64,000 nt of DNA from Iphione sp. A-MEVVRFRX5. Taxonomy: Eukaryota. Below the pieces are notes generated by a model. It had not been told where the DNA came from. It made no database searches and was given only the letters and a program-made list of their open reading frames with translations. Shown piece after piece: positions 13,352 through 49,886 of this stretch. Position 1 is the stretch's first letter; every line of letters starts with the position of its first letter. A program made the translations under genes and the position numbers. The stretch spans positions 63,860,001 through 63,924,000 of the forward strand of contig OZ320316.1 of assembly GCA_976226885.1 (NCBI GenBank), in the 5' to 3' direction.

Positions 13352-16300
13352 TTATGGTGAGCCATAAATATGCGGACACCGTGTCATGCACATCTGCCCA
13401 GGGTTTTGAAATTGTAATTATGACAGCTTTAATCCTAATGAGTGTCCAATATCCATTTGCAATATTCTAAAACAAAAATCACTTTGCAGAAATATCTATC
13501 ACACTAACATGCGATATAACGGTCTATTAGCTTTGTTATATCTTTGCCAAGGAAAGAGCTCTAGCATAGTGCATAAAATCCAAAATACCAATTACGATAA
13601 TAATTTGCACTGGTAGGCCAGGATAAATATATTATGTACGGCATAACTCAATACACGCTCTTGAAAATAAAGGAGGATGCAGCTAGTGGGGACACTGTCA
13701 CATTTCATTTGCTAGAAACGTACTGACGCTTAGCTGAAACAAATGAAACCTTAGTGACAAATTAATGCACTGGCGAGCGGTCTGTTATTGAGGATTATAT
13801 CACACTTATAATCATTGACGGGATCGATTTCTCTAAACTCGTACTTGTTTAACTGTTACTGTAAGAAACGGGAAGAACTTCTATGCTCAGAAAATATAAG
13901 TTGCCATGTCCACACAAAGGTACGACTACAGTACAACTAGCCACGTCCCTTAACACACAAACCCGCGCGCACACACACATTCACAAGCATGCACACACAT
14001 ACCACACACTCGACATAAGATGAGGTCTGCCCAGTGTCTCGGCGCCGATTAGTTACAGTGGCAGGGCTGTAGTATTCACCATCCCGATAGAGGAGCTCGG
14101 CAATGATATGCAAGCTACCTCGTCATGAAAGCATCTACTTCTTGCTCGAGCTTCTAACCGAAAAAGGGCCATTTCATGTTATGTGTCACTCATGCTAAAA
14201 GGCAAGGCACGAAGCACGCCTCTGTAAAGACAGTCAGTAGGTGGACCAAGGAAAGTGGCAGGGCGAAAGCCATCATGAAGTATGCACGAAGGCTATCTAA
14301 ATGCGCGGCTTCAGCACGGAGCGGGTCACCTGGGAGGCCAGAGCCACAATGAAGGCCACCTCCGACAGGTTACTGAAAGCAGATGTAGGTGGACAGAATA
14401 GACATAGGTGTGTAAGTCACATATGAGTGGGCAGACAGGGTAAAGGTCCATGCCTAAGGGAGGGAAAGAAGGGCTGGTTGGTGTGTATGTAAATACGGCA
14501 GATCGTAGGTGGAGCAAGTAGAATAAACTACGACAAGGCTTCAGGGTGCTGGTGCTTAGCTGTAAATACAGAAGGGGCGAGGCGGCAGGAGTCAACATCC
14601 TGGGTAGTGTATGCGTCTGTGTGGGGTGGACCGTACTAACTTCACTGCATAGTGGGTCTGTGTTTAGGGTGGGCCCATTTGTTAATTCGAGCCGTCCTCT
14701 AACTCTGTCCCATATAAACTAAAGAAACATTACAATAGCTTTGTGGCAGGATCATGTTTGTGCTCATTATAGGACACAATCCAACGTTTGAACGATGTCG
14801 ATCGCCGTAACATCGAAAGAGGAAAGTCACTCTATATTGCTTTCGCGTGATTGGAAACTTTCCGTATACTACTTGCGTCCGCCCCGAGGGCGACATCCAA
14901 ACACGGTAAGACAGTACATGTCCTGTCTACTTCCCTCTAAACGTTGACAAATAGTTAGCGCTGTAATACATGATTAAATGCTACGTGTGCAGCGTTTAAA
15001 GGTTAATATGTGCATATGTGTCTTATAGTCCGAAGGCATCCATAATTTGTGCTAACAAAGCACGTGCAGTTATACGTCACGGCAGTTCCTACAGATACAA
15101 TTCTCTCTACACGTTGCTAATGCGGAAAAATGCTTGAAAGATGGACTAGGTGGATTCTGATTCATTACATGTGCTGTTACATAACATCTTTCCCTATTCT
15201 CCTCAATCGGGATGATTAGTGGAAGAAATGGCGGCGTGGAAGCTAATGGCCGGAATCGATTCGGTACAATACGGACCAACGATTCGCAGTTTCCCTTTTG
15301 AGTAAAGGGAAGGTTTATTAGTAGAAATCGGACGTGCATGGTGACTTCAGCTACTCGACGTCCATTAAACCAAAATACGGCGGTTTTAACGTAAGGGACA
15401 GATCAAAACATATATATATATGAGTTATAATACACACTGAATATCAGGATGAAGTATTGACATATCAGAATGAAAGTAGCCATATTTATCAGGACGAATT
15501 ATTCTATTTCATAATGAAGGCATTGTATAATAACTCCTAATACCTCATCTGCTGGTTCATATTACATGACTGTGCTATACGTACATACAAATCTATATGT
15601 ACAACTGTATGTTTTTGGGCTGCCGAAGTGATAATTCGTTATACACTATTTAGTGTACATATGCTTTCCAATTCTTCAAGGAGGAAACAGATCCAGTCTC
15701 TACCGGGTAATACCATGCTGACCCATCATCTTTTTATTAATACTGTTGTCTTTGATGTTTAACTTAAACGTTTATCTCATTACATTCTGTTCGCAAACGT
15801 GAACCTCAATCACTATCGACAATCCACACGACGTGGTGTGCAGTAACTAAGAAGATGATCATTCTTTTCTGAATTACAGACCCAAAATATATTAGATCTA
15901 TCTGTATGAAGGAGTTTCACCACTGAAACAGTTGTCTGACCCACTTCAGAAACTAATCGAACTAAATTCAATAATATTGTCTATTTAGGGTTGTTGCCTC
16001 ATTCATTTAAACCAAATCACGTTAAACCAAAAACAGCCCTAAAGACGTTACCTTCGTGACGGTGACGCATGTAACGCAATTTAGTGGTCTTCCCCTGAAG
16101 ACCACAAATATACAAGGCTTACAAATTGCAAACTCTTAGCTGATGAAGAGAACGAACAAAATGTCAGAGAACGAACAAACTGTCAGAGCGTTTTTTGAAA
16201 GGTTATATATGATCAAATTGGAAAAACTGTAACAGTATCATGCTGTCTGTCGATAACTCTTCTAGTATAATTACAAATATGTGTAACTATCGCCATAGGT

Positions 16301-19182
16301 CAACCATATTAAACATATCTATAGTACGACGATAATGAGACGATTCGACGGACAATTTAGGATGACACGAATGTTCTTTGGTGTATCTTAAAAAGGCTTT
16401 ATGAACCACAGAATAATTTCCCCTATTGCTGTACACTTATGACGTTTAAATTGTGAATAACGACCATACAGTGTTCGGTAAATATCGCCCGTAGGGCTGG
16501 TGCATTTATATTACATGTGATTGATAGGTAGAATTTTTAATTGCCCGACGCAGGTCACTAATGATCGAGCAGCTTCCTTCTGCCGACTCCGGTTTCAGAC
16601 CCTTGCCCCTCGTCTTTATTTAATGTATCTTCGGATTAGACCCAGCAGAGGTCCGCCAGGACCTTCATACTGCTGTGGATGCTACAACTTTCCACACTTA
16701 ACAATCGCTCGTTAAATACCGGAGACCCTTAGGGCAAGCCCTTAACATGCATACGAACTCTGGCCGCCTTCTACATAAGGAACCTCCCCGGAGAGCGGCT
16801 ACTACTGCTACTAATGTTACGAATACCGCTGCTGTAGCTGCCGCTGCTGCCGCTGCAGCTATCTGCAAGTGCGAAGGCCCGGCTCGGCGGAGGCAGTGTC
16901 TCAATTCTACCACTGCACCTAATGACGGCAATCTGGGCTCGGCCATCCTTTAGGTAACTAGCAAGTTTCTCTGGCTTGCAGTAATGAGTTGTTTTCCCCC
17001 CACGATAATTATATCGGAGCCGCTCGCTGGACGGTAGCAGTTTCGGAGGGTTGGGGAACCGGGCACATGCACGCCCTCCCACCTCCCACGGGCTACCCAA
17101 GCATCTTCAATATAGGTGCAGCAACACAAGTGGCTTCTCCATCTTGCACTGTCACGTGGAGGCGTCAATGGAAGAGCCTCCCGACTAATCACTCCAGGGT
17201 AAAGAAACCTTAAGGTAATTACTAAGTCTGCTTGGCAATTACCTGTTACATACGGACCCGACAGTCCGTCAGGATCGTTGCTAATCAGGACGCTATGTGA
17301 GTGTAAGAAATGAGCCGTTCCTTTTGTGCCCTCACCACAATGCATCAAATATAGCTCTTTATACGGACGATAGTTGACACTTTCTTGTATTGCTCCGCTT
17401 TTAAGACTTCTCTGCCCAGATTATTTTCGCCCTCCCCCCTTCGCCCCTCTCGGTGGAGAGAGAGAGAGAGAATGCCCCAGCACGGACGCTTTCTTTCAAT
17501 TCGCGACAATCTGCGCGTTGTCTTTCTCTGGCGTACCACCGACGTTCACTTATCGCTTCCTGCTGGTGCCCATTGCTGGCGCATGGCCAGGGGCCCGTTC
17601 ATTGTTTGCTATATGGCAATGGCGAAAGTAAACCTAGCGCGGACTTCACAGAAGGGGTGTGAGAGTCTCGAAACGTGCCTCAGATGTCAGTGTGCCCGTT
17701 GAAGTCAGAAGGCCCTTTTCTTGTTGAAGGAAGCAGCGTGCACAGGCGTGCTGCTGGGAGGAGCAGGCTGGCAATAGTACGCTCAATATCGCTGTGCAGC
17801 GATCGACGGGGCCCGACCTACTCGTATAGTGCAGATTGAGAGATCGACTGCACATATACAGAAAAAGGGACGCTATCTAATGGTTTCTGATAACTATGGT
17901 TGGCGACGCTTAGCGGCTGAATGCAATATACTCTAGTTATTCATCGCACAGTTTCCCATAAACAGCACGGGGTATGTGTTCTATTCTTTTTCATATGGCC
18001 ACAATCTCTTCGTGCGAATACGCTTTACGGAATTCTACATACAAGTAGTCCTTGGTTGCAGTGAGAACTGCCCTCTAACAAAAACACTTAATGCATATCA
18101 GAGGTTTTTGCGGAAGATGATTATGAAGTTGAAGAAAACCTGCTCCTGATAATGAATTTCCATTTTTCATTATTGTTTTATCATTTAAATTCATTTTACG
18201 AAACTGAAGTAGGGAAGGTACCATATTTTTTTGGAGTTTCTATCAGGTTCCCATCTTTAAAGCCCACACCTCCAAAGACACAGCTCACAAAGTATGGCAG
18301 GTCAACGTTGGACTTAATAGACTTCCTTCGAGCCCTTTAAACAGGGCCACCACACCGCGTAGCATGGTATAGGAGAATAGTGTGTACGGCCCAAGCAGCA
18401 AGGTGTACGATATAGAAGGATGAGAGGAAAGGGTGGTGGATAATAGAGCGTCCTTTTTCTATGCACTAATTCGAGGAAAAGTGGATCTATAGAGGCGTGG
18501 CTGATACACTAATAACAGGGCTGGGGATAGGGCCTTAATCTATCTGAAAGGAGTCCATTATATAGTGTCGAAAATACCATGCCCATTATGTCTCGAGATT
18601 TGTATGTCTCTTGGGCTTAATATACAGTGCAAGTAAGGAGCGCTGCGGAGACCTTAACGTTCTGGTTATTTCATCCATAACCTGTGGTTCACCACCTTGA
18701 CAAAAGAAGCTGGTCGAGGGGGAATCAGGTCGGGAGTGGGTTCAATGTGTCGACAGGTAATGACTGTGGAGTACCTAGAGCTGGAACCAACGGCATGTGC
18801 CCACCGTATACTGGGACATTGAGGTGTCACACTGAGGTCCTGACAATTACACCAACCACAAATAAATGTCAGAGGCAAGATACAATTACTTCCGAATATG
18901 AACCCCAGTAAGTTTTTAAAGGCCGTAGTATAGCAAGATAGCCTGCAACAGAAAATGTGTGCACAATTTATCAATTAAAAGGACTGACCCTCATGATATG
19001 TATAAATGTTTATAAAATCTAAGTGGGGCTTTGTAGTTACCAGAGTTATGTAAGGAAAGGTAATGTTTTAGTCTTCATTTCAGATCGAAATGTATAACAG
19101 ATCTTTCGTGATAAAAGGTCAAAACGTACTTCATATACGCCCTTTTCACATTGACATAAAGAATTCTTAAATTAATAAGTGC

Positions 19183-19210
19183 CTGATGAGACATATGTCG
19201 AAATCATGTT
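19183..19210 (+). other. Hammerhead-ribozyme-like core, probably eroded (Penelope-type remnant?)
   Basis: CTGATGA-GACATATGTC-GAAA-TCATGTT: intact catalytic boxes with a G-C-closed stem II, but no pairing stem I. Confidence 0.25.
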
Positions 19211-19658
19211 ATAGAAGTAAATATAAACAATATGCAACTCGCTAAAAACTTATCAGTGTGAGACCTAAAGGAACCCTCACCATAGCAACAAACATGACAG
19301 ATATAAAAGCCAGGGTGTATGCACTTGGCTGGTTACTTGACTCGATAGCACTTCACGGAGCCGATCTTTGCCACGGCTTCACAAATTCATGTGCCTCCTA
19401 AATGCGGCACTATGAAAATAATGAACACTTGATTGGTTTCCTGTTTTCCTTCGTCCTTCACCATTGTCAGTTCTATTAATAATCTAAAGATAGATCCTGT
19501 TGATTAGGTTTTCAAACGGAAATTAAAAACTGCATAATCATCTGCTTCAGATCGAGACCAGCACATCTTCCTCCTAGCTATCCACTAATTAAAGTTAACT
19601 GTAAAACGGTCCACGGCATTCTACAACTGCGACTTCTCGTCAAACTGATATTAGCCGT

Positions 19659-19710
19659 ACTGGGCGCTGTCCAGAGAGATGCTTTAAGAGGCGACCTGTT
19701 TCATCTAAGG
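19659..19710 (+). repeat. 52-bp dispersed repeat, copy 1 (copy 2 at 21767-21818)
   Basis: ACTGGGCGCTGTCCAGAGRGATGCTTTAAGAGGCRACYTGTTTCATCTARGG, 48/52 identical, all differences transitions; looser similarity extends about 20 bp upstream. Confidence 0.85.
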
Positions 19711-20180
19711 TCGTGGCACTCGGCAGGTAATGAAATAGATCTCTACAATCTATAATACAATATTGATCATGTTTTCCTGACAACCGTTTTTAAATGTTTC
19801 CATCTATCAAACCACAACGACAATCGGCAGACGGGCGGGCTACCCTGAAGTTTTGTATCAGAATACACATTTTTCCAGGGGTAGATAGGATTGCGTTTAC
19901 TGAAGAAAGATAACGTCAACGGTGACATATCTTATCAATCATCTACCAGAAGATCTCCAACCGCACAAATATCAAAGGGTAAGCACAGGAAAAGACTGAT
20001 AGATCAAGATTCACTTGGGCTCTTTAAAATGCACCAAGAGGTCTGCGACGAGGCAAATTCTCTTCCTACTACGTAGTATGCAACCTATTTCTCAATGTTC
20101 CAAGAGGGTTTACTTCAGACACGTAGTTGACAACGAAGGCACCACAGATACTAAAAGCGTCAAAACTGTATGAGTGCCGA

Positions 20181-20208
20181 GGGTGGGGGCGGGGGAGGGG
20201 GCGCGGGG
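20181..20208 (+). other. Potential G-quadruplex
   Basis: GGG-T-GGGGG-C-GGGGG-A-GGGGG-CGC-GGGG: five G-runs with short loops. Confidence 0.6.
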
Positions 20209-20999
20209 CTTAATCGAAGGTGGAAACAAGGGTTATCTCCGCATAGCAGTTCACAATAGCACATCTTTCCCGCTGTACGTGCCGGCTGATGGAACCGCTG
20301 CGTGTGGGCATTCCGCTGTTAGAGGGCGCTGAGGTAAGATCCGTTAGAAATGCTCTTCTACTTCACAGACAGCCTCTTGATGTATGGGTGTCGGTCGACT
20401 TGACACGATCTTCTCGATAATAAATGTCTGCGGTGCGTGGGCATGCTGCCTTTTACGTGAGGTCACCTTCCGCTCTGACACAGCGTATCTGACACCAGTC
20501 GTTTGGACTTAATTTTGTTTTTTACATTCGTCCATTTGACAGAGCTTAACTTGCTCAACGGTGGACAGATTCCCAGAATTCGTCGCACCTGATGTGGTAA
20601 ATCCGTGAGAAAAGAGATCGCATATCCAGTCAATTACCCGTGAATGATAGGAAACAGTAATGGGCTGACGTTCATGGCGCACCTGTCGCTGAACTTATTA
20701 ATTTGTCCGTGTCTTCATTAGAGCCAGAGTAATCACGTGTGCGACACACGAGCTGCAACCTGCGGCTAAACAGGTGTCAGTGTCGGGCCTAAGACAAGAA
20801 TTCCAGTTCTGAAATCATCTTCGTTCAATTAGCACACCAGGTCTGATCTGTCCTCTCACATCCGGACCACCTCCGCAGGAAATGAAAGTAAAACCGTGTG
20901 CACCAGGCTGAGGCGTGAAAGAAAGACGGGCTCCTTAGTTTAGACCAACAGAAGTTGAAGTGACTTTTTCCAAGGGCGACCTTTACAAATTTAAACATG

Positions 21000-21600
21000 A
21001 TTTGCTCCAAACTACCATCAGCTGTAGGGGTGACATCCCAATAACACAGCACAGAAATTACCTGTTTCTTTCATAAATCACTTGTGAGTAGGTGTGTGCC
21101 TTAAGACAATAACCAAACGTGGAAGGAGGACCACAACACTGTTATTTTCACTGTATATCAATCTTTAAGTACGAAAGAATATAGATTCAACAATCATCTT
21201 TGGGGAAGGAAGACAATTGAACCCATATAGGTGTTATATGTAAAATGTCAGGGAATATTGTTTTTTTCTTAAAACTATCATTTTAAAACAGGACATGATC
21301 GTACATTTTCCTTCTTACTGACTTTATTTCGTTTATAATCTGTAAAGGCGCGCTTGACGTTATCTTTTGAGACAAGATCGCTTCACTGAAGCGGCTAAGT
21401 GAAGTAGATGTAGAATATAAAGACTGCCTGGGATGTTCCTCGACCTTGTGAAAAAGACGATTCAATATCTCCAGATCAATGATTCGCAATGCCCCATGTA
21501 TTGCCGTACAGTGCAAATATAGTTCAAACGTCCATATAAATTCCCACATCGGGACATCATCTTCCATCTTTTACTTTCTTAAACAAGGATACGAGTAGGG
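21000..21600 (-). mobile_element. Possible heavily eroded non-LTR retrotransposon reverse-transcriptase remnant
   Basis: One minus frame with many stops gives, in RT order, LLVSLFKK, SFSQGRGTSQAVFIF (cf. GFRxGRSTxxAIF), NVKRAF (cf. DxxKAFD) and PQR*LLNLYSF (cf. PQGxxLSPxLF). A frameshifted YAD-like stretch follows near 21020. Spacings are shorter than canonical. Confidence 0.35.
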
Positions 21601-21766
21601 AAAGTACACGTTTTGATGAAAAGGTTCCCAGATGTTCTTTTCTTAAAAATACACCATAGACGTCTAGGTACAAGGTGCCGGATGTTTTCGGTGTGTTTAA
21701 TGATACAAATCTATTTTTTAAATTTTATTTTACCTGCTCAACTTGCTTCAAACTAATACCAGCTCC

Positions 21767-21818
21767 ACTGGGCGCTGTCCAGAGGGATGCTTTAAGAGGC
21801 AACTTGTTTCATCTAGGG
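21767..21818 (+). repeat. 52-bp dispersed repeat, copy 2
   Basis: 48/52 identical to 19659-19710. Confidence 0.85.
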
Positions 21819-21866
21819 CTTATCATATTGTACATGGCAACAGGAGTTCAATTACATTGTGTTGAC

Positions 21867-21896
21867 TACTAACCTTTTACTGTTACATAGGTGAGT
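21867..21896 (+). other. Antisense (plus-strand) 3' splice site immediately followed by a 5' splice site
   Basis: TACTAAC-cttttactgttacatag|GTGAGT; branch A at about -19. No supporting transcript or plus-strand gene is seen. Confidence 0.35.
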
Positions 21897-23836
21897 TCAG
21901 CTTACATGGTGTTTATCACAGGGTCTCTAGATATAGGTAGGACTATGGTGCTATCCGGAAACTAGTAGTAAAGGTCTTGTTACTTCTGTGACGATGTAAG
22001 GGGATGATAAGGCAAGGGTTGATAGAAATATCAGTGATTAGAATATGAAAAAAACTTTCGAGTTATTCGAGGAAGAAAATAATTTCCGGTATCTTTTAGA
22101 CAGATACAGTCGCAAATTTTGTGGGCAGCCATTTTTATTTCACAAACGTTTTGTCACAGTTAAAGGTGTGTTTGAAATATGATCCGCGCATTTTGGGGCA
22201 AGAAACTGTTTTCGTCGCGAATAAAAAAAAATTGTGGAGAGTGCCTGCCACCTACTTGGACACAACTGAATCAGCAGCCTGAGCAATGCACATCTGGGCA
22301 AAGCAATTGTTTTTTTGTACGTGAATAAATTCTTTAGCCACACGGTGGGTAAACAAAATGTATCATATACTGTGGAGAACGGGTTAACTTAACGTATCAA
22401 ATGAATACTACAAAAAAACGCATTAACTTGATGTCAACACATATCACCCAGCTGTAGTGAGTGTGTTGATGTGAGAGGCGTGCCATACAATCGGCCTTAT
22501 CAGTAGTATGTAAGAATGGACCTTAAACCCGGACCGAAAGTTACATGTACCAAGTGGCTTCGTCGGTGGCTTCTATGTCTTCTAGGAGCATGCTGTAGGT
22601 AGGGGCAGCATATCATTGAGCCTATTGCTGAAACCTAAGCTTCCGACTGGCCCTCCGCTTCTACTAGATGCGACCCTAATGAACCCTCTAACTTCATGTC
22701 CTTACCATCAATCATAAGACAAGTATTGCAGCTCCCAACGCTCCCTCCTCAAAAGTATTCCGAAAGTAGCAAGGACGACTTCGAAGCTCAGAATGGTTGA
22801 GTCGGTAATACTGACAGCTCAAAGTTCCTCTGAGGCAATCGCACTACGCAGGATAAGTAGTGGACACTGACAGAAACTCGAGAAACACAGATGGTATGGC
22901 GTATAAGTGGAGGGGGGATAAGGGGGCCTCCACCTCTCAAGACGCACATTACGGGGAGGGCGTACAGAGAGCGAACGAGAGAAGGAGCGACAGCTATCCT
23001 AGAGGACAACATTATCTCATGTCTCGGAATATGTTGCCGGTAGACGAATGGCCCTCCTCACGTGAGCCTGCTCGCTAACATGGTCCGATGCACTGCAAGC
23101 CGCCAAGCCACAGCCTCTGTAAAAGGCCTATCCCCGGAGCTCCCACTGGGGGATAGCAAAGCACACCATAACTGACCGCGGCGGGGAAAACGCCAAATAA
23201 CCCAACTTATCATGCCCACTGCCCGTGTCAAGCAAACGTGGGCCACGTATGTAGCAATTGTGAACGTCGCCCGGCGTGGGCAGCGATTTTCTTTGCAGGC
23301 ATCAATCAGTTAATAATAAGAGCGCGTATATGCTTCAATGGCGGCAGCCTTTATCGACGGCACTCGAACCGTTTTCGGTGGCGGCTGCAGGACGCCTCTT
23401 TCCTGCGGGCCACATCCAGCAATGCCACCAGATGAGCCGCGGTAATTACAGGCGGCGAGGGTGGACCTTGCCAGCCCCAGCTAAGCCGGCTTCTAGGGAC
23501 GAGCCACCGGGCGAGACACTAGCTTTCCAGCAGTGTGCCCGCCAGGCAATGTTCTCATCCAGCTGGTTAGACATGGAGCCTGCCTCCTCTGGATTTGTCG
23601 ACGCCTCTTTGCTACTGGTCAGCGTACGCAGAAAGACAATCTCGACTGTGTATGTGAGCCAGGAGGCCCGGTGGGGATAAAGCGAGGAGACTTATCGAAT
23701 AGGGTGGAGAATTGGACATAATAATAGCAAGCGTGTCGCAAACCATGGCGAACATATCGCTTTAACGTGTCACTACTAATAATCTTATAGATTACCTTGA
23801 TGCCTATTGAATGCAGATGAGTAGACAGTCACATAC

Positions 23837-23920
23837 CTGTTGACTAGTAAAGGATTGTTGGGAGACGAGGTGGAAAGTGCATACATACCTATAAAAAGAA
23901 AAGAAAATCAACTATTAGTA
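23837..23920 (-). other. Candidate recursive splice site with 52-nt RS-exon (23888-23837)
   Basis: Minus strand: TACTAAT (branch A at -27), then agttgattttcttttctttttatag|GTATGTAT, then a 52-nt exon ending ACAG|gtatgt. It is on the Fat sense strand. Confidence 0.6.
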
Positions 23921-26900
23921 AAGGAAATGGAATGATATTTACGACAAAGAATTAGTTATAGTGTTTACACATTACACAAGTTAAAACCTCACCGAGTAAA
24001 AATTATCTTAAGGGGCTCTTAAGGACCTGACTGCTATAAAATCATGAAGGAAGTGTTCTTTCTACGCCAAAGTTTTCTTCGGCATCTTTGAAGGGGAAAC
24101 TTTTCAGTTAATATTGCAATCAACGCGTGTTTTCATGTATTACCCGGTAAAATCTGCTTACGACCTCGGCATCAGCTACATGTGATGTGCAGGACGCCAT
24201 GTTAATTGACTAGGATAAGCGTTCGTAATAATCTCGAAAGAATCCCCACGACTTGGATCTTTTGAAGCTTTCTTCCTCACCCTGCGTCATTTCTGAACAA
24301 TTAATTCTTCTTCCTCCAATCGGATTAAGGGGACCTTTTTGGCGTCCTTTCCGGACCCAGTCTTCAATCTTGGATACAAGCATGTGACGGCCTGCTGGGT
24401 ATTAATTGAGAGTTACCTCATGCGGGCGGCATTTTTGCTGGCGGTGTGACGCCGCCTACGTCATCAACCCGCAACAATCTTCCCTGTTGGATTCACAGAT
24501 GGATCTTCACGACGCAAGAGACACGTCGTCTGGGCGGCAGCGGCGGGAAAATGAACGATCTCGGCGCGTCCGACCGCCAAGAAAGGCACTCTGATCTCTG
24601 CCGAAAATGTCTTTCAATTACATGTCATTGTTTGACTGATTTTTCATCACTCCCATCAGCAGTACCGGGTACACCATGATCAATGGAGATTCAGCATGTA
24701 GGAAATAAACCTGTAATTAGTTCCTCAGATGTCGTCGCTGGTTACGTGATGAACAAAGCGGATCGTGCCGCTTACCGACAACTGTCAAGCAGTCTCATCG
24801 AAATCAAATACTACAAATACACATAACAAGAGAAAAAATACGCAAGAAAGTCTTCCTCTACGTGCAGTTGAAATAACCACACTGTTCTTCAAGAGGCTTC
24901 TATCAATGTGACCAACATGTTTTTTGTTTGAATTTTCCATATGAACGTCAATCAAATTAACACTTTATGCAGTGTCCTGCAAATCAGGCGAGGGTAGAGC
25001 ACCTTATCGAACAGGAACTTCTAAAACTGTCAAATATCTCTATGTCGCGCTTTTTTTTTGTGCGGACATTGCAATATTTTGCACGGTAGCGATTTCTGCC
25101 CGAGGGGAATCTCCCAGAAAACACCCACAAGCCCACAGCACAGCATGGCGAATCCTAGGAGTGACATATGCAACGCTTCCTTCCAATTGCTGGAACGTAA
25201 GCCGTCCGTCACATAAAAGATCGATGAAAGGCGGGCCACAACGGCCTCCTCAACAATGGCGAGGGGCGTGAAGGAGTCCCGAGAGGGCCCCAGGAGGCAA
25301 GCAGTGCCCTGGCCATCGATGCTCCTACTAGGATGGCGCTGTCGCCTGTCTCCTCCCGATCTTTTTTTCTTTCCATTTATTTTTCTACCTCCACCTTATC
25401 ATAGGACATATCAGATGTTTAATTCATGAACCGGCCCTGGTGTGGTATCACCTGACGCTGGGCACTGCTGCCATCTTGTCTGACTTTGGAGTGGATTATC
25501 TCTTAAGACGGAGACATTTATAATATACTGAGGATGAAAGGTTGCGTCTGGTGGAGATTCTCCATATAGAGCCTGAATGATGTGTCCTGTGTAAGATTGA
25601 ATGGTGGAGACTGATGACGGCTTTGCTTTAAAGTGGATATGTTTGTTTCTACAATATCGAAAGATCGGTTGCCTATGGCTGGATCATACATATTTTCTGG
25701 AAATAACAGACGTTACTTTGTGATATACATCTGTATTCTTTTGATGATGTTCCAAGCATATCCATGTACATAGGGGGAAACATGCATCATATTACAACAT
25801 GAGTTTATAGTGTCTATTTACTATCTGTGAAGATATATAACAAACAAGGGTCAAGAAAATATTCTTCCAACCCTTGGTCACGTTACATGAATGACTGAAC
25901 AGCTAACACACTTGACGTTTGTGCAGTTCTCGGGTGTTGTTCCCAGGCTGTTTTATGTTCCCGGGTGAAAATGGTTGGGCGGTCAGCTCCGAAAAGGAAG
26001 AAGCTGATACAGCAAAGGATATTGGAGAACCGACGTTCAAAAAGACTTCCAAAAAAGGGGGAATTTTCTTTCAACCCTGTTGTGGAAACATGCAGTTTAC
26101 CTCAGCCGTGCCTGCCCTCTAGCAGGATTCTGTGGCCTAGCTTCAGTGGACGTGGTCGATCTGCTGAGTGGAATGAGCCCATTTGGAAATATGCCAACTA
26201 ATCTGGCCCCAGTCTAAGAGCTGCTCTCTGGCAAGATGCCCGAGCGGTCTCACAGGCCGCCCACCCAGCGCGACAACCTACTCGACCGGTCTCATCATCG
26301 CTCTCCATTGGACTCATCCATTTCTTATGTCATTCAGTTTATAACACGATCAAGAATTTTTTCGCCGCAAACTAACACATAGACATGCAATACAACCATA
26401 CCTGGGGGATGAGCAATCGGCAAGACAAAATGACTTGGAAAAATGCATACTTCAGTCGACTGCTTTACCCATACATGGAGAAATGTGTCGCCTTATCTAA
26501 TATAACATAAGCATTCCGGAGAGATGAGGGAACGCGCCATACTCGACTAGAAGGTCGCGTTAGATTAAATTACATTTATTGCAAAAATTTCGTGTCGAGG
26601 ATTCGTTCATTCGAAAGATTTATTGCACATTCTTGATGTTATGAACAATGTTGTAGAGGTACATTATCTCCAATATGATTTCCGCAGCCACTTTCCCCTG
26701 AAATACCAAGTGGCATTTAAATTAAAACATACTAAATTTCACTTGCTTTACCGAGGTGGTCCTCCCTCAAAAGCTTACTTCACACCGAACACACTTGTTG
26801 GCATATTCTAGGTCCTTTTAACAGTAGCTGTCTCGACTTCCCGTTACATGTACATAGATTAGCCATGCATGTTGTATAGGGAGTGCAGTTTGCCTGCTTC

Positions 26901-29900
26901 CTCCTAGGTGTGCGGTGCGAACTGAATGGTCCGAAAATGGAGCAAACGTATGTATGTAGACTGCTTCATATTAGCCTGCACTTGGCAAGGGCCGCCGCCT
27001 GTGGCAGCACCACTGTTTCATTTATAACAGTGACTTGCCCTTGACAAGACCTACCGCAGCGCCGCCATAGTTGGCCTCTTTTTTCCCTCTTAGTTTCCAG
27101 CCTTTTGGGCCTGGATTTTCCATCAGGGACTGCACTGACGACAATAAGTCTGCCTGAAGCAGGCCAGACCCAAACATTCCATTTCATATACTGTTATGAG
27201 GTTGGGATGAGAAGCGACGCAAACGTCATTATCATTGGTGGCTATGGTGATGCTTTTTCTTCATTTTTTGTTTGAAAATAACATTCATACTATAAAACGG
27301 CGCGGTGATGCATGGACGGTTATTTACTGTAGCTAGGAACTCAAACAAAATGCAATAGTTTCTGGTGAGGGATACCCACTGCGTTTTCGTCCATTGTAGG
27401 AAAACCACAATTGGGACGTATTGATTCTTTTTGAAAATACTCCCATGGAAAAATTCTACTGCTGGAACCTTGTGGTGAAGTCGTGGCAACGGTGCCGAAC
27501 CATGTCTCTTATTAATGGTATGGGCATAACTTTCAACCTGTTTACATCTACAAGAGAACACTGACCCCGATGTAGTAGCTTTTAAAGGTAATAACGCTGA
27601 AGACGTGCCTCGGGAGACACGTCAATTCTCAAACATAACATGTAAGCCCATCGTTAAATAATAAGCTTAATTGACTATCTGCTCCAGTGCTATTAGTGTA
27701 TCAGTGTATCAGAACCACTAAGCTTTGTTGGTTGTCTTGTGGGTCGGCGTAACGTGCTTGGCGAAGAGACCACAGAGCCATTTGACACAGACCGAAGCCC
27801 TCAAAGGGGACCCAATCTGGACTAGGCCGGGCGATGTCTCACGACCACTGATTGCCTGGAAGACCCTCAATTCACGCATCTGTCCGGCTAACAATTCGCT
27901 GCCGCCGCTTAATTCTGACCGTCTGAGTCCTCTAAATTAGGCGTGAATGCCAGTCGCATGCCAAGCCGTTATCGGTGCGTGGCTTGTCGTGGCCATCGTC
28001 GACAGCGATGACAGGATCTCAGAGGTAGTCGGCGAGGCTTATCAAGTCCAAAAAATCTTGCGTCATGCACCATCTCAACAGTTTTCAGGTAGTTCTGGCG
28101 GTGCTTCGACGCCGACTTAATTAGTTGTGAACTGGTTAAGTGGTCTCAAACTGGGAGAAATGGTGGGGAGGAATGTTTGTTAAGATCTGGCTAAAGGTAC
28201 CATTCGATCGTTAGAAATGCATTGTTGTTGCTCATGGGAATCCCGCGGTAGCTGATTTTCCACAGTGATACCGCCACTAGAGCGCGGTTAATTCATTTCC
28301 TCGAACAATAGCCAGATGTTCTCAATACACGGCTCTTTAAAACTCAAACCGCTACCACACGGTACCAGCCTTCTCAAGCAAGAAAGGCAAAGCAATATGA
28401 GATAAATTCAAAGCGTACAACACACTAGGACTGTTTCGGTTATATCCATCATCACCCGGACTTGATGTCTCTACATGTCTGTATTTGATGGAAAACGGGC
28501 GTTTTTTAATTTCTCAAGATGCCTTATTAGAAATGCCTAATTCTACAGATCGAGCAGCTCTATTCAATTTTCTGTCATTAATATTCCCACCAAGGTCCAA
28601 TTAGCAACGTGGCTTTACTAAATGGCAATGGCGGATTCTGGTAGCAGCTCTGTCATCAACCATCCTCAATTATGCGATGTCCTTCGCTTTAAGAGAATTC
28701 CCCAGTGTAAACTTTAGACATGTACTATTAATAGACGAAGTTCCAGGTTTCCCGCCAGAAACTCAAAGGTGAATGAATGGGAGCTGCCCCGAGAGCCCAA
28801 TCACATGAACATCTATATCGTTTCCTGCCCCACCAAGCCCCACCGCCACACGTCAGTGCGATCGGTAGGGGCGGATTGAGCGATCGCGGCGTCAGTAATC
28901 GAATCAGAGACGAACACCCATATTTCGTTTCCAGACCCTACGATATAATCGTACTACTGGTAGTTATCGTCACTAGGTGGTGCTTGCGTTCCATAGCAAC
29001 GGTCGCCAGGAGGTGCACTACCATTGAAATATGGGTGACATTAGGGGTATGACGAAAGTATGCACCTAACTGGAAAGGGCCACCCTTGAGCAGCTAGAGC
29101 GGCTAGGCATCTAACACACACCGTAAACGGGCGTCTCTACTATCCTTATATCATCAATACAGACGATCCTATCAGGACTAGATCACTCTAAATAATGTTG
29201 GCAAGATAACACCGAAAGCAGTCCAAGGAAAACGCTCGCCAAAGTCAAATCTCCAAGATTCAAAGCGACCACATTTTTTGTTTCGCGTGTCCTTTTGTTA
29301 TCAATATTCCTAAAGGAGGGCCTGCAATCAATTTATCTGAGAAACCTCGTCGATACGAATATCAAATGCAGTTTTCCTGCTAAGGACGTCGCCGCCGCAC
29401 CAGAAGGGCCGCTTTACCACGGTTTACGGGATCCAGCCTGACCTCATCAAGCAACTTACCTTCATCTCTTAATGTAAGAGATAAACTGAACTTCTCGTCA
29501 CTAGTAAATAAATTCAACGCCGCCCAATGATTTAGCCATCTCTTACATATAAAAATGAAACGATATTCTCGAAATATGTACAGAATACCAGAAATCATCT
29601 TTATCCTACAAGTACCTTATTCGGGTAGAATACAACTACAAACTTGTACAAATTCCAAACGCGAACGCACAGAAGGGAGGAATGGAATGGGAAACTGGTG
29701 GATTCAGATTGTACACAGTCAGCAGGGTAATCTAACGCAACGCACGAGTTGCACTGTCTGCCAGAAGTCCCTTTTGTGACCAGGTGATGTCCGGAATAGG
29801 AATGATAATTTGCTGTCTGAAATAAACACCACTATTGAAAATTTGACACCAGTACACACCCCAAAATGCAATGCCACTTATTACTGAAATACTCGAAAAA

Positions 29901-29977
29901 TATTTTTAAAAATATAAAATTCTTTTCGTGTCTTGCTGACCTCCCCGATGCTTTTTGGGTGGTATTAGTCCTGTAAT

Positions 29978-30159
29978 TGACAGATTGCTGTGTGACAGGA
30001 TGACATGTTTTACAGTGACAATATCTGTCAAACTGTTCCATAGCCAATGACATTGTGCTATTTTGTCACATGACTCATACATCCAATCCGTGCAGACGAC
30101 ATTCGAGTGACAGTGTCACTCATGTGTGACCATACTAGAATTATGACTGCCACATGTCA
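29978..30159. promoter_or_regulatory. Dense TGACA/TGTCA homotypic cluster (TALE-homeodomain-like sites or transposon subterminal repeats)
   Basis: 10 copies counted in about 180 bp, including the palindrome GAGTGACA-G-TGTCACTC (30105-30121); four more to 30436. Confidence 0.4.
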
Positions 30160-31042
30160 TAATGTAGTTATGCAAATATATAGACATTATATCCATTGAG
30201 AATGTGCTGAGGCATCTATATTTATTTTCAAAGTGTATGAGAAAGTAGAGTATAATGATACTATAACTAGAAATCTTTTTATTACATTTTGAACATGACC
30301 ATAGTGTAAGTACAACTGTCACCTTGTGATGGGTGGGCGTGGCTACGTGACAGTACGGCAATGTGTCAATTGGATAAGGAAGACCAAGGATACACTGCCA
30401 GTGGCTACAGACTCAAATAACTTCGAATGTTTGTCACAAGTATCCCGTGGCTAATCTTTCTTTCATGCAGCATGTACGAATACGAATAGTACGGTAGCAT
30501 ACTATGTGCCGACTCGAGTGTATGCGAACAAAAATATGGCACAAATGTTGCACACGTCACTGAACCTTTATATATATAGGATATCCTTTCATCAGCGATA
30601 GGTTACTTACCACTGCCGTACCAGGGCAATTAAACGTAATCGGTTCTTTTCCTTTCGTGTTACATATCCAAATTCACAGAGAAATTAAACTTAATTACAG
30701 CATAGATGACCAATTATGGAGTTGGCTGATACAAGTATTCGACTGAAATGTTTAAGAAAAATCAACACGCACTTAATTACAGGACTTGCATTCAAGGGCA
30801 CGACCACCTAGAAAAAAAAACAGTCACCTAAAGCCTACCAGCTGTTCTCTAGATGTTCCACTTAATGGTCTGACGAGAAAGCTCGATGGGTGGACCTAAT
30901 TCGCTTTATCTACGCTTTCTCACGTCGAATAGCTTCATGGACCAACACCAAACAGTAAGCTGTTTGTGGCTTCTGATCGTGGCTTCCCCATGAGCCAAGA
31001 AATCCGTTGCGTGAATTAGGAAGGTAAAAGGAAGGGTAGAGT

Positions 31043-31059
31043 GGGGGTGGGTGGGCGGG
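31043..31059 (+). other. Potential G-quadruplex
   Basis: GGGGG-T-GGG-T-GGG-C-GGG, 1-nt loops, at the edge of a CpG-rich island. Confidence 0.55.
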
Positions 31060-34000
31060 AACGACACCCCTGTGCCTCTTGACGCAGCCGCCGCCACCGC
31101 CGCCAGTCTACCTAACGACGTATTTCCTATTGCCAATCATCAGCTCTCTGGCTGCCGCCTTCCTCGGGAATCTTTAATCGGAACGCACTTGTGCTCCTAG
31201 TCAAAAGAGCTGCGTCGCATCGGCCAATCGATGGGCCAAGACGCGCCTCTGGCAGTATGAGCGGCTCAAGCGACCGGCCGGAGCAGCTCCCCTTCCAAGT
31301 CAATACAGATGGGAGGAGAGTGGACCAATGGATAACTGTTTTAGTACCACCCAGACTGTATTTAAGCGGTATTGCTCTTCATAAGGCATTTAAAGAAGTT
31401 GTTAATAAAATGACTTTAGTAAAACGTGTTCTGTCAAGAATATCGAAGGGCGAGCGGGGATTGGATGAGCAGGCGGGGCGGTATTCAACGCTTCGCTGAA
31501 CAAAGGACTGCGGCGCTACTGTTTATCGTTCATCGTACTTCCACTGTTCCTAACGCTTTTAATTTCTGTCGTTTAGTCCTGAGAGGCTGTATGATGGTGA
31601 TGACTAAAAACAGAACTGGTGAAACAAACAGCTAGAGTATCGGGAACTGGAAGGAGAAATAAGGCCGCATTAAAGAACACTAAGACAATTTATCGATGCC
31701 CTCGCTCTATTGGACTTGTCAATAGTCTTCCTACTGGTCCATTACTCAGCCACCGCTGACTGTGGAGAATCTTTGGTCGCCTTAATGCAGACGCCGATGA
31801 AGTTGCCGTGTAAAGTAAGTTCAGACTGCCAGACTCGAGCAGTTCATCAAGACACGCAGCTCGTCGATGAGCCTCTCCTCAGTCTTCGCACTCTGTCAAG
31901 TCTCAAGTAGCGAGCTGGTCGCCAGCCGTGGACTTACATGTGTATGATGGAGTGGGCAGAGCTCCGTGGACGCGGCTATTATGCCCAATTGGCGGCCCCC
32001 AGCCTGCGACATCATGCCCTCTATTGAGGCTCATATGAAGCGGCAAGCTGAGCGCCGTATCCAGAATGAAGAGGGATGACTAGGCTAAGGGGACGAGGTG
32101 AGGAGGACGCAAAGTACCATACAGAATGGAGTGACGGGGGCAAAAACTGAATTTTAGTTGCATTACGGAGCGACCATTACTAGCACAATGACCCGCCAGA
32201 AGGCATTCACCATACAGCGTTACCTAAAAATTATTCAATGCAACTATAATAAATTAATTGACCTGACATTACAGTATATACAACGGGAATATTCAATCAG
32301 GAAATTGCTGTGGTATGCCTGGTTGAGAGTGTTCCACTGTGAAGTGAGGCGCACCCGAGTATTAAGTGGATGGGAGCCCACTGGCTCTATGGGGTTTTAA
32401 AGCAATGAAAGCGACTGTAGAGATACTTTACTGAGTAAAATGAAAAAAAAATGCAATTAACAAGGGCCTCTCGCCAGCAACGTGATTGTACATATCACTG
32501 CAATACCTCTATGGATTGCTTGTAAGTGTTCTACGAAGGACAGACTCATCATACATGGAACGTATATATACATATGCATTCTTATACACACGTATATATG
32601 TACAGTGTATCAACCGCTATTGTCAAGAGAATAATAAAAGTAAATCCTGGAGCACACTAAAGAGAGGTGGAGTTCTACATATAAAGAGTTTGTTTATTCC
32701 ACTCCGTACAAAAACATATCCACTTCTCTACTTTGTTGGTGAAATGGAATTGTTCTGAATGCAAAGAGGTCTGCCGGATCCAATCGTAATATTCCTTCTT
32801 CAGTGTTTAGATTCCAAAGTCGCTAATATACAACAACGCGGCAGGTGGTGCCGAAGGATTGTGCTAAGTTGGACCGAGCGACGGAGAGCTAGGTTCGTGG
32901 GGGCGTGGCAGACTAGTTGAGATTGCTGGGGGGGGGGGCGGATCTTAAACTTGTTGTTGACAGACATACGCGGTCCAGATAGACGCGATCCACGAATCTA
33001 ACGGAAGACCTGCGTGTCTGGCCGCAGGGCTATAGGAAGACTGCGCCTGATAGAATAATCCCTGAATCATGTTATCTGGGACCGTGCCAGCGCGGCCGCC
33101 GACGTGGTCAATGTTTAATGACGCAGAGTGGGCTGCTGCTGGCTCTTTTATGTTTGGCTGCCCTGGACTTGGGGCCCCCCCATGTTCAGTTAATCGTACA
33201 GCAAAGATCAACGGCAACCGAGGCTCCTGCATCTACCTGCTTGTGTACTGGCCTATGGCTGGAAGTGCGCTGCCTGACCCAATGACTGATACACTCATTG
33301 CCTGGTCGTAGACAGCTGGTTGCCTTAATGATTAAGCACCCTGCTGATCTGCTGCCTGCTGACAGTTTGTTTTGTAAATTAAGAGCAGCTAATGTTTAGT
33401 TCCAAGACATCCACCTCCTTTACATCAACACTGTTATTGCTACCACACAGCATGCGGAAACCTTTGCGGCCAGGCTGCTTGTTAGATAGGCCGTTTCACG
33501 CTGATCTTATCCTTTCTCTAAATACAAATGGCGCATTAGGCATCCAGAAGTTCACCGTACTACGAAGCAAAGAAGACCGATAAATACTACGGGCACCTTC
33601 CTCCATACGAAATACAAAGGATCAGTTATAACGATGCTACTCATTCAGATACCCTTCTATCTGAAGCATTCGTACACAGGCGTATATCTCCCTTTTGTAC
33701 AGAATAATGAAGTTAATGAGGTGTGCTACTAAAACAATCAAGAACACATACAGGGGTTGGACACCTGTGCCCATCGATTATTCTAGCAAAAAGATGAAAT
33801 GAAACCAAAAAAACCACAAATGGACAGACGCGGACGACAGCATGAAAAGGAACACTAAGTAATTGATGTCTTTAAATGCACAAACGTATGTCTGTACATG
33901 TACACTGTGTATAAGCGTGTGTAAGCGCGAGCATGAGTGCGTGCGTGTGTGTGAATGTAAGTGCCGTCCGTCACGCATTCGTTCAGCTATGCCTGTATAC

Positions 34001-37000
34001 ACTGGGTCATCTTTGAGTAGTGCTTTAACACCGCGGAGCCCAGTTCTGGACGCCGCCAGGAGACTCCATGATTAAGGTCACATCTGGGGCCTGCCATTTG
34101 ATGAGCCGAAAGAGAGGCGAGGGATACATCGCTGTGGGCCACTGTTCGATCTGGGTCAATTTTCTAACGGCAGCGATGAGGGCACACCAGCACTCTCGAT
34201 ATGCCTGTCAGGGCAAAGCCCGAAATTAAGAGAAGGACCTCTTGGATCAGAAGTGTTCGGGAAAGGGGGCACGGTCAACGAAGAATGAAGTAGGGGTAAT
34301 CAGAGAATACAAAAAGCAACCGAAGCCACGGACAGCCTATGGGACCTGGGCGTAGGTGGAAGGCCCCTGCTACATGTGGGTATCATGGGCACTGGGCATG
34401 TACAGGGCAAAGACATAGGCTGATTTATGATAGTGCAAACGCATCGCGCTTTATAAGGTAATTCACGCACCTGCATGCTAGTCATAGCTGTCTAGTTCTC
34501 GATGCGGAAGACTTGGTTTAAGATAGATGCGGTGGGAGAAATTCTATACTATGCAGGCCAACTGAAATGACCTTAAGTTGATCTATGCACCGCTTCGAAG
34601 GTTAATTAATTGTCTGAAAACTCTGGCGGCGTTCAGCTGAGATGAGCGATGCTGCACCATGAGGACATGAGAATGTCAATTAACTTCTGGTTACATAAAA
34701 ACCTTATATGACCTAAGTTGACTGGGACGATCTTGCTGGAGGTGGCGCAGCTGACTTCACTTGAAATTACCAGGATAGCTGGGATGCGCAAGGAGTTCTT
34801 TATGAAACATCAATCACTCCACCCATTCAATGACCTGGAGAAGGGGTACAGCGGAAGGACCCTCAAACGCATGTTTCCTTCTGAGGACTCTGGCTGGTAT
34901 CTACGCTCCGAAACTCAAATCTGCAGATTAATTACAACATCAGAAGCTACTCTCGCCCCCAAGGTACATAGCAGGTGGGCCACGCCGTTGCTATGACGAC
35001 GACTCCAACTTAACACGTACAAGAGAAGACATGGAGGAGGAACGCGATGACGAACAAGATGGCGGAGTAGTTACGAGGGCACTGCCGGCGGCTCTAGTCA
35101 TGATGGACCAGCCAAATTTCTGAGCAAGAGCATGGACTCTCATCACTAAAAATAGTAATCAAGACACTGGTATGACCTCCCAAGGCAAATTGGTCACGTT
35201 TTGATCCATCGTGTCGGTGCTTATCTGCCATTTCAAAGCGTGGCATGTTGAGCAGAGTAGCAATATTTGCAGTACTTTCTCCTTTAAAATGGACACACGC
35301 GTGCCCTTTATACTATTTGAGCGCAGCATGACATTCATTAGGATACATCAGGACGAGTATAAAGCATTCTACACTTTGGTATAGATGATGATGTCAACAT
35401 CTTTTCGGTCGGACCCAGATACTCTGACACGCACGCCTGTGTAGAGAGATACATGGATCTTCCAGGGGATATCAACGGGCTCGGAAAAAAATAAATACAA
35501 CGCGTTGAATTTTTACGTGTGCGAGGCGAATTGGACACTTCTAATACGATAAGACATACCCCTCAAAATTCCCATGCATGACCAGTTCAACTGGAAAACC
35601 ACATTGTACCGAGGTGTGCACAACCCACTCCCCTCCGTTTAGGACTTCTCCGGCGTGAAAGTGTAATCTCCCAATCAATATGCATCGCCCCGCGGCAATA
35701 GCGGTACCCAAGCGAACACGAGGAATGGCGGGCCGCGGACGGTAATGAGAAGACGACCTTCGGGGCCCCCGCCGCTGACCGTCAACCTGTCCCATCCGCA
35801 AAGCGCGGCCGGGTAGCCGGCAGCAGCCCTTGACACCTGTACCTGAGGTTGCCCTAGGCCTACCAAGGTCATCTATCAAATGTCTGCCTATCCGGGTGAA
35901 CCCGTTAAAGGGTTCGAGAAGCAAGTGCGGAATGTCCAGCGGCAATACTTATATCGTTGGATAAGGTCATCTTCTGCCAAAAGCGCGCATTTCATACCCC
36001 TTCCGGCTACAGTTCACAAGCGCGGGCCAAATGACGACATCACTGTCGATGATGTTAATGTGTTCTGCAACCTGATGCTTGGATAATAATGGATATGGGA
36101 ATAGAGTCGGTTGTGCTTTCCTGCAAACTTCCTGATTCAGAAAAAGCCAAATCCTGCTGTTTGCAGCGGTATGTGCATGTATAAGAAGTGACCGGGGTCT
36201 AAATCCATATTGATTTTCTGATTTCTTTGGTTACTGGGCTGCTCCTGAAATGTTCAAGGAGCGAACGGTGAGTTGTTCAGTGACTAGATGCGGTTGATAG
36301 ACATGTGGTCTCACTCGACGCCACACGAGATGGGCGTGGGAAGCCGATATATTCCAGACGCGAAGAGCATGGGGGGACATCATGTGGGCGGGACAGGGTG
36401 GACGTAAGGGATCCGGGTGCAGACCCAGGGCGCTGTGCAGAGGTCACGAGCTTGCCCCCTGCTGACGGTCTGTTACCCCTGTTGGCTAGGCTGAAATGTA
36501 CTGGACAAAGGGCGACCCAGCGGGCGGGTGTTGACAGCTTTATCAGGCTGCCTGTCATGGCTTATCTAAACACCACCAGCGACCAGCAGAGACCGACGTA
36601 TTGTTAACGTCGTACCAATAAAACGTCACGCCTTCAACCAGGAAGCAGCCGTTGTTCGGGCCACCCATTCTCCGGTCCATGCATCATGCACATAAGGCCT
36701 GCCATAGATCTTCCGAACAGGGAGAGATATATAGTACTGTCATTTTTATGGTAGCGCCTTCCTTTAGCCGCCAAAGCGGGCGGTGGCGGCTTGACCCCGA
36801 GTTTTGATGCAAAAGATGCCCCGGCGTACCTTTGTCACCTTCTGTGATTGTCAGTATCTTTGTGGGGGGAGACTCTGCTTGACCGTGACCGAATTCTTTA
36901 GAGCTAAGGGAAAACAGAACAGGCGTGGATTTCTCTATACATCACCAACCAATGAAGGAAGGTCAAAGTGAGGGTCGACAATGTGCAATCGTCTCCATCA

Positions 37001-38907
37001 AAGTGTGTGGCCCAGTTGATCCCTGTGTAGGTGACGGTTGACAACTCAGCAAGCATACGACACGGTTACGTCAGCGGCCAATAAATAAGCCGTGGTACGG
37101 AACATGACGCCCGACAGTCGGTCAGCGGTCGGGTCGCGTGGGCGCCGCGCCGACAAGGCCGAACGCCATTACATAAAGAGAAATGAAGACCGCCGGTCCG
37201 GCCTCCGGTCCCTGGATACGGCTCCCCGCTCGTCTCCGATATGAGCTATGTGGCTGGTGTCGACGTGGGAGCTCGACGTGGGGCCACTGGGGCAGTCATT
37301 TCGGGCACCCGTTCCACAGTCGACAACCAATTAAGTCAGTGCTAATTAAGGCCTTGCCAACGGCTGCTGACCTCCGAGTGACGCGCCGCCGCGACTCCGT
37401 CGAACAGCTGACCAACACACGCTGGCTTGCGCTAACAGCGACGAACCTTGGTATGGGAATTAAATTCACTCATCACATCCAAGGATGATCCTCGTTGGCC
37501 GACCGACTGAACTTATTATTTCCTCCTCTCTGCCATCATTTTTAAAAGTCGACAGAACGATATAGATGGCTTCACGCTGGGTTTGTCTGTTCATAAAACA
37601 AGCCCGATTTCATCACCCTAATGGATTCTAGTTCGCTTACTGAGTCCTGGCGTCATCAATCACATGGAGGACGCGACATAATCCTCACCTAATGACGATG
37701 ACAATAGGCCGAATGAGAAGCCCTCCACTCCATCACGGCACGATCACCGCGAATATACTATATACAACATGTGCACGAGGCGAACTGAGCAGCGCCACTT
37801 TAAAAGATAATAGCAAAATGCGTACACGCCAAAAGATCAGAATGACCAAATTGTTCTGGACTATCGCCAAGGTGACCGAGTTATTATTCCAGCGGGGTAA
37901 CATTAGTGCACTTCGTGGTTTCTTTGTTACAGTCAGTGGTGGGTCTAAACGGTTGTCATTCAGGGAGGGCGCACTGACTTCAAGTGCCCAACTTGAACTA
38001 TCAACACATGTGGCGTCGGTTGGGCAATAGATCACGGTACAATTAGAAGTGTTCCCATGCTCGATCTGGAGAAGATTTTTCGGATGCAATATCTTTCCAA
38101 TAGTAGACCAACTTGTGTCCAAGCTGTGCGTGACTCAGGGCCCACATACAGGGATGCTGGTGCGTAACAAATAAGCGTCAGGCGCTAACTTGTGGCCCCA
38201 AACTACAGTATGAACAGCCCCGGGAATGACCGTGATGACCGACGCAGAACATCCGCCCACTGGGAGATCATGAGTTCAGAAACAGTGGAACATAAAACTT
38301 ATAAGTAACTCGATCCGTGATAGTAACTTGAGAGTTCACTAGTTTTATACATGAACATCTCCCATCCTGGGAGAGAAGATCTAGTATAGCAACATGGCCG
38401 GAGGGAAGGCTGCAGCAGGATATTCTAATAACAAACCATAGATTATGTTTTTCATGGAGTCATTTCTTTGGGTATTAAGTGGTCCTTCTCATGAGTTCTG
38501 CTTCATAATTATAGAAATCCGCTGTCTCATGATAATTCACACGAAAGCATTCATGATACTTGCACATGCATCACCCTTTGATGAAGCAAGAACAAATCTT
38601 GGCTCGGATTAAATAAAAAATAGTATAAAGAAGCTCAACTCCTCTTTTCCCGCCTGTTCCATTGAAGGTCTCGTGGGCTGTCGTATGTGTTGGTATTGGT
38701 GTTTCTGTGTACAACTAGTACTACTCACTAAAATACTCTGACCTTAACGAAGGACCCCCGACCAACAGAAAGACTGGCCTGTTTGCCGTATACCAACGAC
38801 CATCCAGGGACCAGTCGCATGAGTAAATGATGGACCGTAACCATCACTTCAAATGTCTAGTATCTTTACACTTTTACTGCAAATAATGCCGATAAAGATC
38901 GGTATAA

Positions 38908-41968: not shown

Positions 41969-41999
<31 letters not shown>

Positions 42000-45640: not shown

Positions 45641-45671
45641 GGGGGCGGGGGGGGGCGGGTGGAGGCAGGGG
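45641..45671 (+). other. Potential G-quadruplex
   Basis: G5-C-G9-C-G3-TGGAGGCA-G4. Confidence 0.5.
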
Positions 45672-45688
45672 AGAATATGATTTGAAAA

Positions 45689-45765
45689 GACGGATAGACG
45701 ATTATGGGTGGATGGATGAATGGATGGACCGATGGATGGATGTGAGGATGGACAGACGGATAAGG
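45689..45765 (+). repeat. Degenerate (GGAT)n tetranucleotide repeat
   Basis: ggatggatgaatggatggaccgatggatggatg... Confidence 0.85.
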
Positions 45766-49750: not shown

Positions 49751-49760
49751 TCTTTGAGTC

Positions 49761-49886
49761 ACTTTTAGTCATCAAATTCAGCACTTTTTGGACTTAAAGT
49801 CATCAAATTGAGCACTTTTTGGACTTTTAGTCATCAAATTCAGCACTTTTTGGACCTAAAGTCATCAAATTCAGCACTTTTTGGAC
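49761..49886 (+). repeat. 31-bp tandem repeat x4
   Basis: ACTTTTAGTCATCAAATTCAGCACTTTTTGG units at 49761, 49792, 49823 and 49854. Confidence 0.95.

Follow-up and report, generated by a model that had tools for sequence, protein, structure and literature searches.

The junction 23889|23888, deep within a 55,811-nt intron of a Fat-like cadherin gene of Iphione sp. A-MEVVRFRX5, fuses an acceptor directly to a donor, and we consider it fairly probable that this is a genuine intronic recursive splice site, through which the giant intron is probably removed in two steps. Support for this reading comes from the outlying score of the site, from the restriction of comparable sites to the sense strand, and from the orthologous intron of a relative, where this kind of site is found again and its core is selectively conserved. 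Use of the site in vivo, the order of the two steps and the skipping of the 52-nt segment that follows the junction are points that we infer only from the DNA itself. The window, by which we mean the whole stretch of DNA that was analysed, comprises 64,000 nt (GCA_976226885.1, OZ320316.1, positions 63,860,001-63,924,000), and the gene lies on its minus strand.

Host gene and giant intron

The gene is a multi-cadherin-repeat gene of Fat-like type. Its upstream cadherin-repeat exon (57040..57354, minus strand; 315 nt, phase 1 at both ends) was delimited by sequence and open reading frame and matches Pfam PF00028; it ends in ACAG, and its own acceptor reads tttcag|GTATGA. The downstream cadherin exon (1167..1228, minus strand) measures 62 nt. 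When the two exons are joined, the 57040-1228 junction reads ...HIHPTTG|LITTTNRRLDRE..., also written ...HIHPTTG|LITTTNRRLDREKQEEHILE, and one cadherin repeat runs across it unbroken, which indicates that everything from 57039 to 1229 (1229..57039, minus strand) belongs to one intron, 55,811 nt long, beginning with GTAAGG and ending with TTGCAG. The Fat label for the gene should be taken as provisional, having been only weakly checked; it is backed by a faint match to Pfam Cadherin_FAT4_N in the large upstream exon of one relative.

None of the ten open reading frames within the giant intron that were compared with Pfam gave a match, so that they provide no sign of a nested gene or of a transposon reading frame, and Rfam and tRNA scans of the intron returned no family and no tRNA. 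A search of a protein collection with the exon peptide yielded no transcript-derived fragment of the source species, all matches being genomic open reading frame calls of other species. The giant intron also harbors a tandem array at 49385-49890, built of a 64/127-nt unit in about 5.5 copies with 84-88% matches, and a 31/62-nt array of about 4 copies that follows it directly. Two runs of N are present in the window, one of 208 nt at 777-984, in the intron that follows the 62-nt exon, and one of 135 nt at 3674-3808, in the giant intron.

Architecture of the predicted fused splice site

Read along the minus strand, the site has the layout tTACTAATagttgattttcttttctttttaTAG|GTATGTA. It consists of a predicted branch-point sequence, TACTAAT (23914..23920), whose branch A at 23915 precedes the G of the AG by 26 nt; a polypyrimidine tract (23891..23913) with 17 pyrimidines among the 20 positions from -23 to -4, 15 consecutive pyrimidines and TT at -5/-6; and the putative ratchet point itself, the fused 3'/5' splice site AG|GTATGT (23883..23890), in which the AG occupies 23890-23889 and the G of the GT is 23888. 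The first-pass annotation had described these elements as TACTAAT, a near-pure pyrimidine tract and TAG|GTATGT, and all of them were verified in place on the minus strand. Its distances of 33.2 kb from the donor and 22.7 kb from the acceptor also hold, as the site cuts the 55,811-nt intron into 33,151 + 22,660 nt, at 59% of its length from the donor side.

As an acceptor, the site scores 11.9 bits, above both flanking real acceptors (5.6 and 9.2 bits). The upstream exon was checked to end in ACAG, so that joining it to the site would, at the level of sequence, recreate ACAG|GTATGT as had been proposed; the predicted regenerated donor, ACAG|GTATGTAT, scores 5.7 bits, compared with 7.4 and 6.4 bits for two real donors. 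A second GTATGT donor (23831..23836, minus strand) has its GT at 23836, in the context ACAG|GTATGTGA, and delimits a candidate cryptic RS-exon of 52 nt (23837..23888, minus strand). This RS-exon donor has the same score of 5.7 bits as the ratchet donor at -3 to +6, and the bases of the two are identical from -4 to +6, in line with the earlier description; they differ at +7/+8, where the ratchet donor has AT and the RS-exon donor GA. Inclusion of the 52-nt segment would shift the reading frame (+1) and place a TGA at the 3' end of the 62-nt exon, and the stop codon expected there is indeed present.

Comparison with chance expectation

Long T-rich stretches are common in introns, and an acceptor-like stretch might merely have come to abut a GTATGT, the resulting juxtaposition being unused and without function. 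The octamer AGGTATGT taken alone is unremarkable, with five matches in the window against two expected. The full combination behaves differently: among the 222 AG|GT sites on the sense strand of the intron, a single one, that at 23888, unites YAG, at least 15 pyrimidines in 20 positions and GT[AG][AT]G[TA], while the antisense strand has none under the same criteria and order-2 Markov simulations predict 0.15. So as not to depend on criteria tuned to the site, all AG|GT positions were given a score from a generic acceptor-plus-donor matrix for metazoans, which uses general consensus frequencies and was not trained on the source species. With this fused score, 23889|23888 reaches 17.6 bits, the next sense site 9.0 bits and the best antisense site 10.2 bits.

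In 150 simulated introns, the maximum per intron had a mean of 9.8 bits (sd 2.1; top value 15.8), which places the site about 3.7 sd above the null maximum, a level never equalled in any of the simulations. When the 138 kb of intron from the two species scored here are pooled, scores of at least 12 bits are found at four sense sites and at no antisense site. The predicted branch point, moreover, is a consensus match at the right distance, whereas ACTAA[CT] within the -42 to -16 window is found at 0.5-1% of random positions (0.5% in the source intron). These results, and the fact that a relative has the same architecture with a core under apparent selection (below), make a chance juxtaposition unlikely.

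Recurrence in the orthologous intron of a relative

The exon peptide led to five genomic open reading frame calls with 63-78% identity, in all of which the reading frame continues into an intron whose phase-1 position is the same. The in-depth comparison was made with one relative (relative 1; ENA ERZ25767047 ctg39058, a contig of 3.9 Mb), in which the exon is 76-78% identical at the protein level and about 74% identical at the DNA level. Its intron was followed downstream from one open reading frame call to the next over 82 kb (loci L001, L003-L007 and L010-L012), and the next exon was not reached within this distance, so that the orthologous intron must be giant in relative 1 as well (>82 kb). 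No alignment between the window intron and the relative 1 intron was obtained apart from (GT)n.

Fused sites nevertheless recur in this non-alignable intron. On the sense strand of relative 1, sites of 16.1, 15.5 and 12.5 bits are located 46,499, 76,235 and 74,082 nt from the donor, respectively, and the antisense strand has none of at least 12 bits. Simulations gave a mean of 0.4 sites of at least 12 bits and none of at least 15 bits in 120 runs. At the two best sites the sequence is cACTAATgaactgt[t/c]tgttttctgtctttgCAG|GTATGTA, and both have cACTAAT, a pyrimidine stretch about 26 nt long and CAG|GTATGTA. What they share with the window site is ACTAAT at about -27, a pyrimidine tract and YAG|GTATGTA, and TT occupies -5/-6 in all four fused sites (one in the window and three in relative 1).

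This likeness does not extend beyond the splice signals, and the sites lie at different distances from the donor (33 kb in the window versus 46 and 76 kb in relative 1), for which reason orthology between the window site and the relative 1 sites cannot be established; the sequences point to a likeness in kind, with positional orthology unproven. A second relative (relative 2; ENA ERZ26168297 contig_344) has no fused site in the 14 kb of intron covered, and in a fourth species (NCBI GCA_029979725.1) the contig ends 4.9 kb into the intron. Most of the gene calls on contig_344 of relative 2 (L002, L009) contain several in-frame TGA codons; these calls on an animal contig are evidently artefacts, made when eukaryotic DNA of a metagenome assembly was passed through a prokaryote-style gene caller under a TGA=Trp code.

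Paralogous modules in relative 1

Judged by their sequences, the two best sites of relative 1 are paralogues. Each belongs to a ratchet-type module of 116 nt (L006:19310-19425 and L012:5887-6002, the latter on the minus strand of L012), and the two modules stand in the same orientation, 29.7 kb apart in one intron, with the third, weaker fused site 2.15 kb upstream of the second. The block from -34 to +82 (116 nt) is 83% identical between the modules, and the sequences flanking it are unrelated. The 20 mismatches are unevenly spread, with one in the 41-nt core (-34 to +6; 40/41 identical) and 19 among the remaining 75 nt (binomial P = 0.004). As the mismatches avoid the splice core, selection appears to act on the fused splice signals themselves.

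The existence of two copies with unrelated flanks, 29.7 kb apart, could also be taken to mean that the motif is a piece of a dispersed repeat or a transposon, in which splice-like signals occur by accident. However, the relative 1 module has only these two copies in 92 kb, both in the sense orientation, and the 1 kb around the window site, module included, has no second copy within the 64-kb window or the fetched loci. An open reading frame that spans one of the relative 1 modules found only itself among 5.8 billion proteins, and neither core had an exact-pattern match in the metagenome contigs scanned. With no further module matches in these searches there is, within their limits, no sign of a dispersed repeat family. 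The distribution of mismatches likewise differs from what neutral repeat decay would produce. We thus regard an origin of the site as a mere repeat fragment as most unlikely, and such an origin would in any case be compatible with present use as a ratchet point.

Returning to the recursive-site reading, it is tempting to speculate that the ratchet points of this lineage form a distinct GTATGT-type class that was spread by copying of a module of about 116 nt within expanding introns, although we hold this to be rather doubtful. The copied module would contain the branch point and the pyrimidine tract as well as AG|GTATGTA and the first part of a cryptic exon. If this were true, giant cadherin introns would gain recursive steps by duplication and not by point mutation, and the relative 1 modules, 29.7 kb apart, would represent one such event.

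The 52-nt segment downstream of the junction

Downstream of GTATGTA, no similarity between the window and relative 1 was found, nor a matching downstream donor. Site A of relative 1 runs at once into G-M-stop, and no donor in the 300 nt downstream of it scores higher than 1.3 bits; at site B the downstream donor is only a weak CAG|GTCAGC at +45. The RS-exon and its donor are thus without counterpart in relative 1, suggesting that the 52-nt exon and its strong donor are specific to the lineage of the window.

This bears directly on the proposal of the first-pass annotation that the two matched donors tune the dose of Fat, with the 52-nt RS-exon acting as a regulated poison exon, included at a regulated rate and leading through a frame shift to NMD. 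The donors are indeed identical from -4 to +6, and inclusion would lead to an early TGA within the following exon. Regulated poison exons, however, tend to be highly conserved, and since the 52-nt exon has no conserved counterpart in relative 1, the dose switch is left unsupported. The 5' end of U1 is complementary to AT at donor positions +7/+8, which gives the ratchet donor the better extended match (AT versus GA) and thereby a small edge to skipping of the RS-exon; with the two donors equal from -4 to +6, such skipping is not assured. In vertebrates, deposition of the exon-junction complex can repress the regenerated donor and so favor inclusion of the RS-exon (Blazquez et al. 2018). In flies, on the other hand, cryptic RS-exons of about 50 nt, which show little conservation and are mostly out of frame, are recognised and then excluded, the acceptor|donor core being conserved (Joseph et al. 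2021, PMC8605326). On balance, a regulated poison exon seems quite unlikely, and the evidence points to the 52-nt segment being a cryptic exon which, by analogy with flies, would be skipped once it has been recognised.

A further reading would see in the very strong acceptor the start of an ordinary alternative exon, either a cassette exon or an alternative last exon that yields, for instance, a truncated ectodomain isoform, with the GTATGT being incidental. In the window, the in-frame read-through does stay open for 34 codons. This frame is not conserved, however, with site A of relative 1 reaching a stop after two codons (G M stop), and no polyadenylation signal is found within 1.7 kb in the window or within 3 kb at site A of relative 1. 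In addition, the conserved part is AG|GTATGTA itself, which an ordinary acceptor does not need. We therefore consider an ordinary alternative exon very unlikely.

Taken together, the original proposal of a recursive site gains from the outlier score, the sense-only occurrence, the TT at -5/-6 and the recurrence in relative 1, all at the sequence level, while the proposed NMD switch of Fat dose is left unsupported, the 52-nt exon not being conserved.

Proposed two-step removal and relation to known systems

Under the recursive-site reading, the spliceosome would recognise TACTAAT, the long pyrimidine tract and the AG, with branching at about 23915. This recognition would probably be aided by exon definition, which would span the 52-nt RS-exon and its ACAG|GTATGT donor. 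In the first step, the exon 57354..57040 would be joined to 23888 and 33.2 kb removed, leaving a recursive intermediate in which the upstream exon is fused directly to GTATGTATGC and by which the donor ACAG|GTATGTAT is regenerated. In the second step, this donor would react with the acceptor at 1229, so that the remaining 22.7 kb are removed together with the cryptic exon and the mature mRNA carries the plain 57040-1228 junction.

To our knowledge, flies and vertebrates are the only groups in which experiments have demonstrated recursive splicing. Drosophila reportedly has ratchet points with cryptic RS-exons (Hatton 1998; Burnette 2005; Duff 2015; Joseph 2018/2021; Pai 2018), and vertebrates are reported to splice recursively through RS-exons (Sibley 2015; Blazquez 2018). 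The consensus of the fly ratchet donor is GTAAGT, and the donors of fly RS-exons are generally weaker than the ratchet donors. At fly kuz and Bx, a weakened ratchet donor reportedly leads to exon inclusion and loss of function. Recursive sites are present in most fly introns >40 kb, near the midpoint (Pai et al. 2018, PMC6110457), and the segments that they delimit range from 2.6 to 63.6 kb (PMC8605326, PMC6110457, bioRxiv 10.1101/006163). TT at -5/-6 is found in 196/197 Drosophila ratchet points; among ordinary acceptors of the fly, its share is only 44% (Duff et al., bioRxiv 10.1101/006163). Intronic sites that are fully suppressed are few in vertebrates, many of whose RS-exons are annotated and included (PMC8605326).

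By analogy, the closest match to the window site is the Drosophila intronic ratchet point. In both cases, a sense fused acceptor|donor lies deep in an intron >40 kb and near its midpoint (here 55.8 kb and 59%), with a prominent pyrimidine tract and TT at -5/-6, and the segments of 33 and 23 kb fall within the fly range of 2.6-63.6 kb. Both also have a cryptic exon (a candidate one in the window) of about 50 nt that is out of frame and poorly conserved and has its own donor, and conservation, in the window as far as the comparison with relative 1 suggests, is confined to the acceptor|donor core. In contrast to the fly sites, the donor is GTATGT at all four sites found here, the host is not an insect, the site is a prediction from sequence, and the RS-exon donor of the window is as strong as the ratchet donor from -4 to +6. 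Vertebrate RS-exons resemble the window segment in that a downstream donor defines the exon, inclusion leads to a premature stop and the host is a long cell-adhesion gene; they differ in that the window exon is unannotated, as far as is visible, and not conserved.

A separate likeness to annotated vertebrate RS-exons is seen in the 315-nt cadherin exon, which likewise starts with a 5' splice site-like sequence. AG|GTATG, with Gly-Met codons, opens this exon in three species (window 57349-57360 on the minus strand, L001:10050-10062 and L002:9993-10005), and in the window its start, ttcag|GTATGA, has a fused score of 9.7.

For amphioxus, and likewise for Fat and Dachsous cadherins, our search of the literature brought up no account of recursive splicing. 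The recurrence of the ratchet motif in the non-alignable intron of relative 1 suggests that another animal lineage may handle very long introns in the same way as flies and vertebrates, here in a cadherin of planar polarity and growth control. Such a finding would be an incremental extension of a known mechanism and not a new mechanism. With regard to the donors, the four real exon donors that we saw read GTAAGG, GTAAGG, GTAGGT and GTAAGT, and the fused sites have GTATGT in 4/4 cases; it may be that ratchet donors favor +4U specifically in this lineage.
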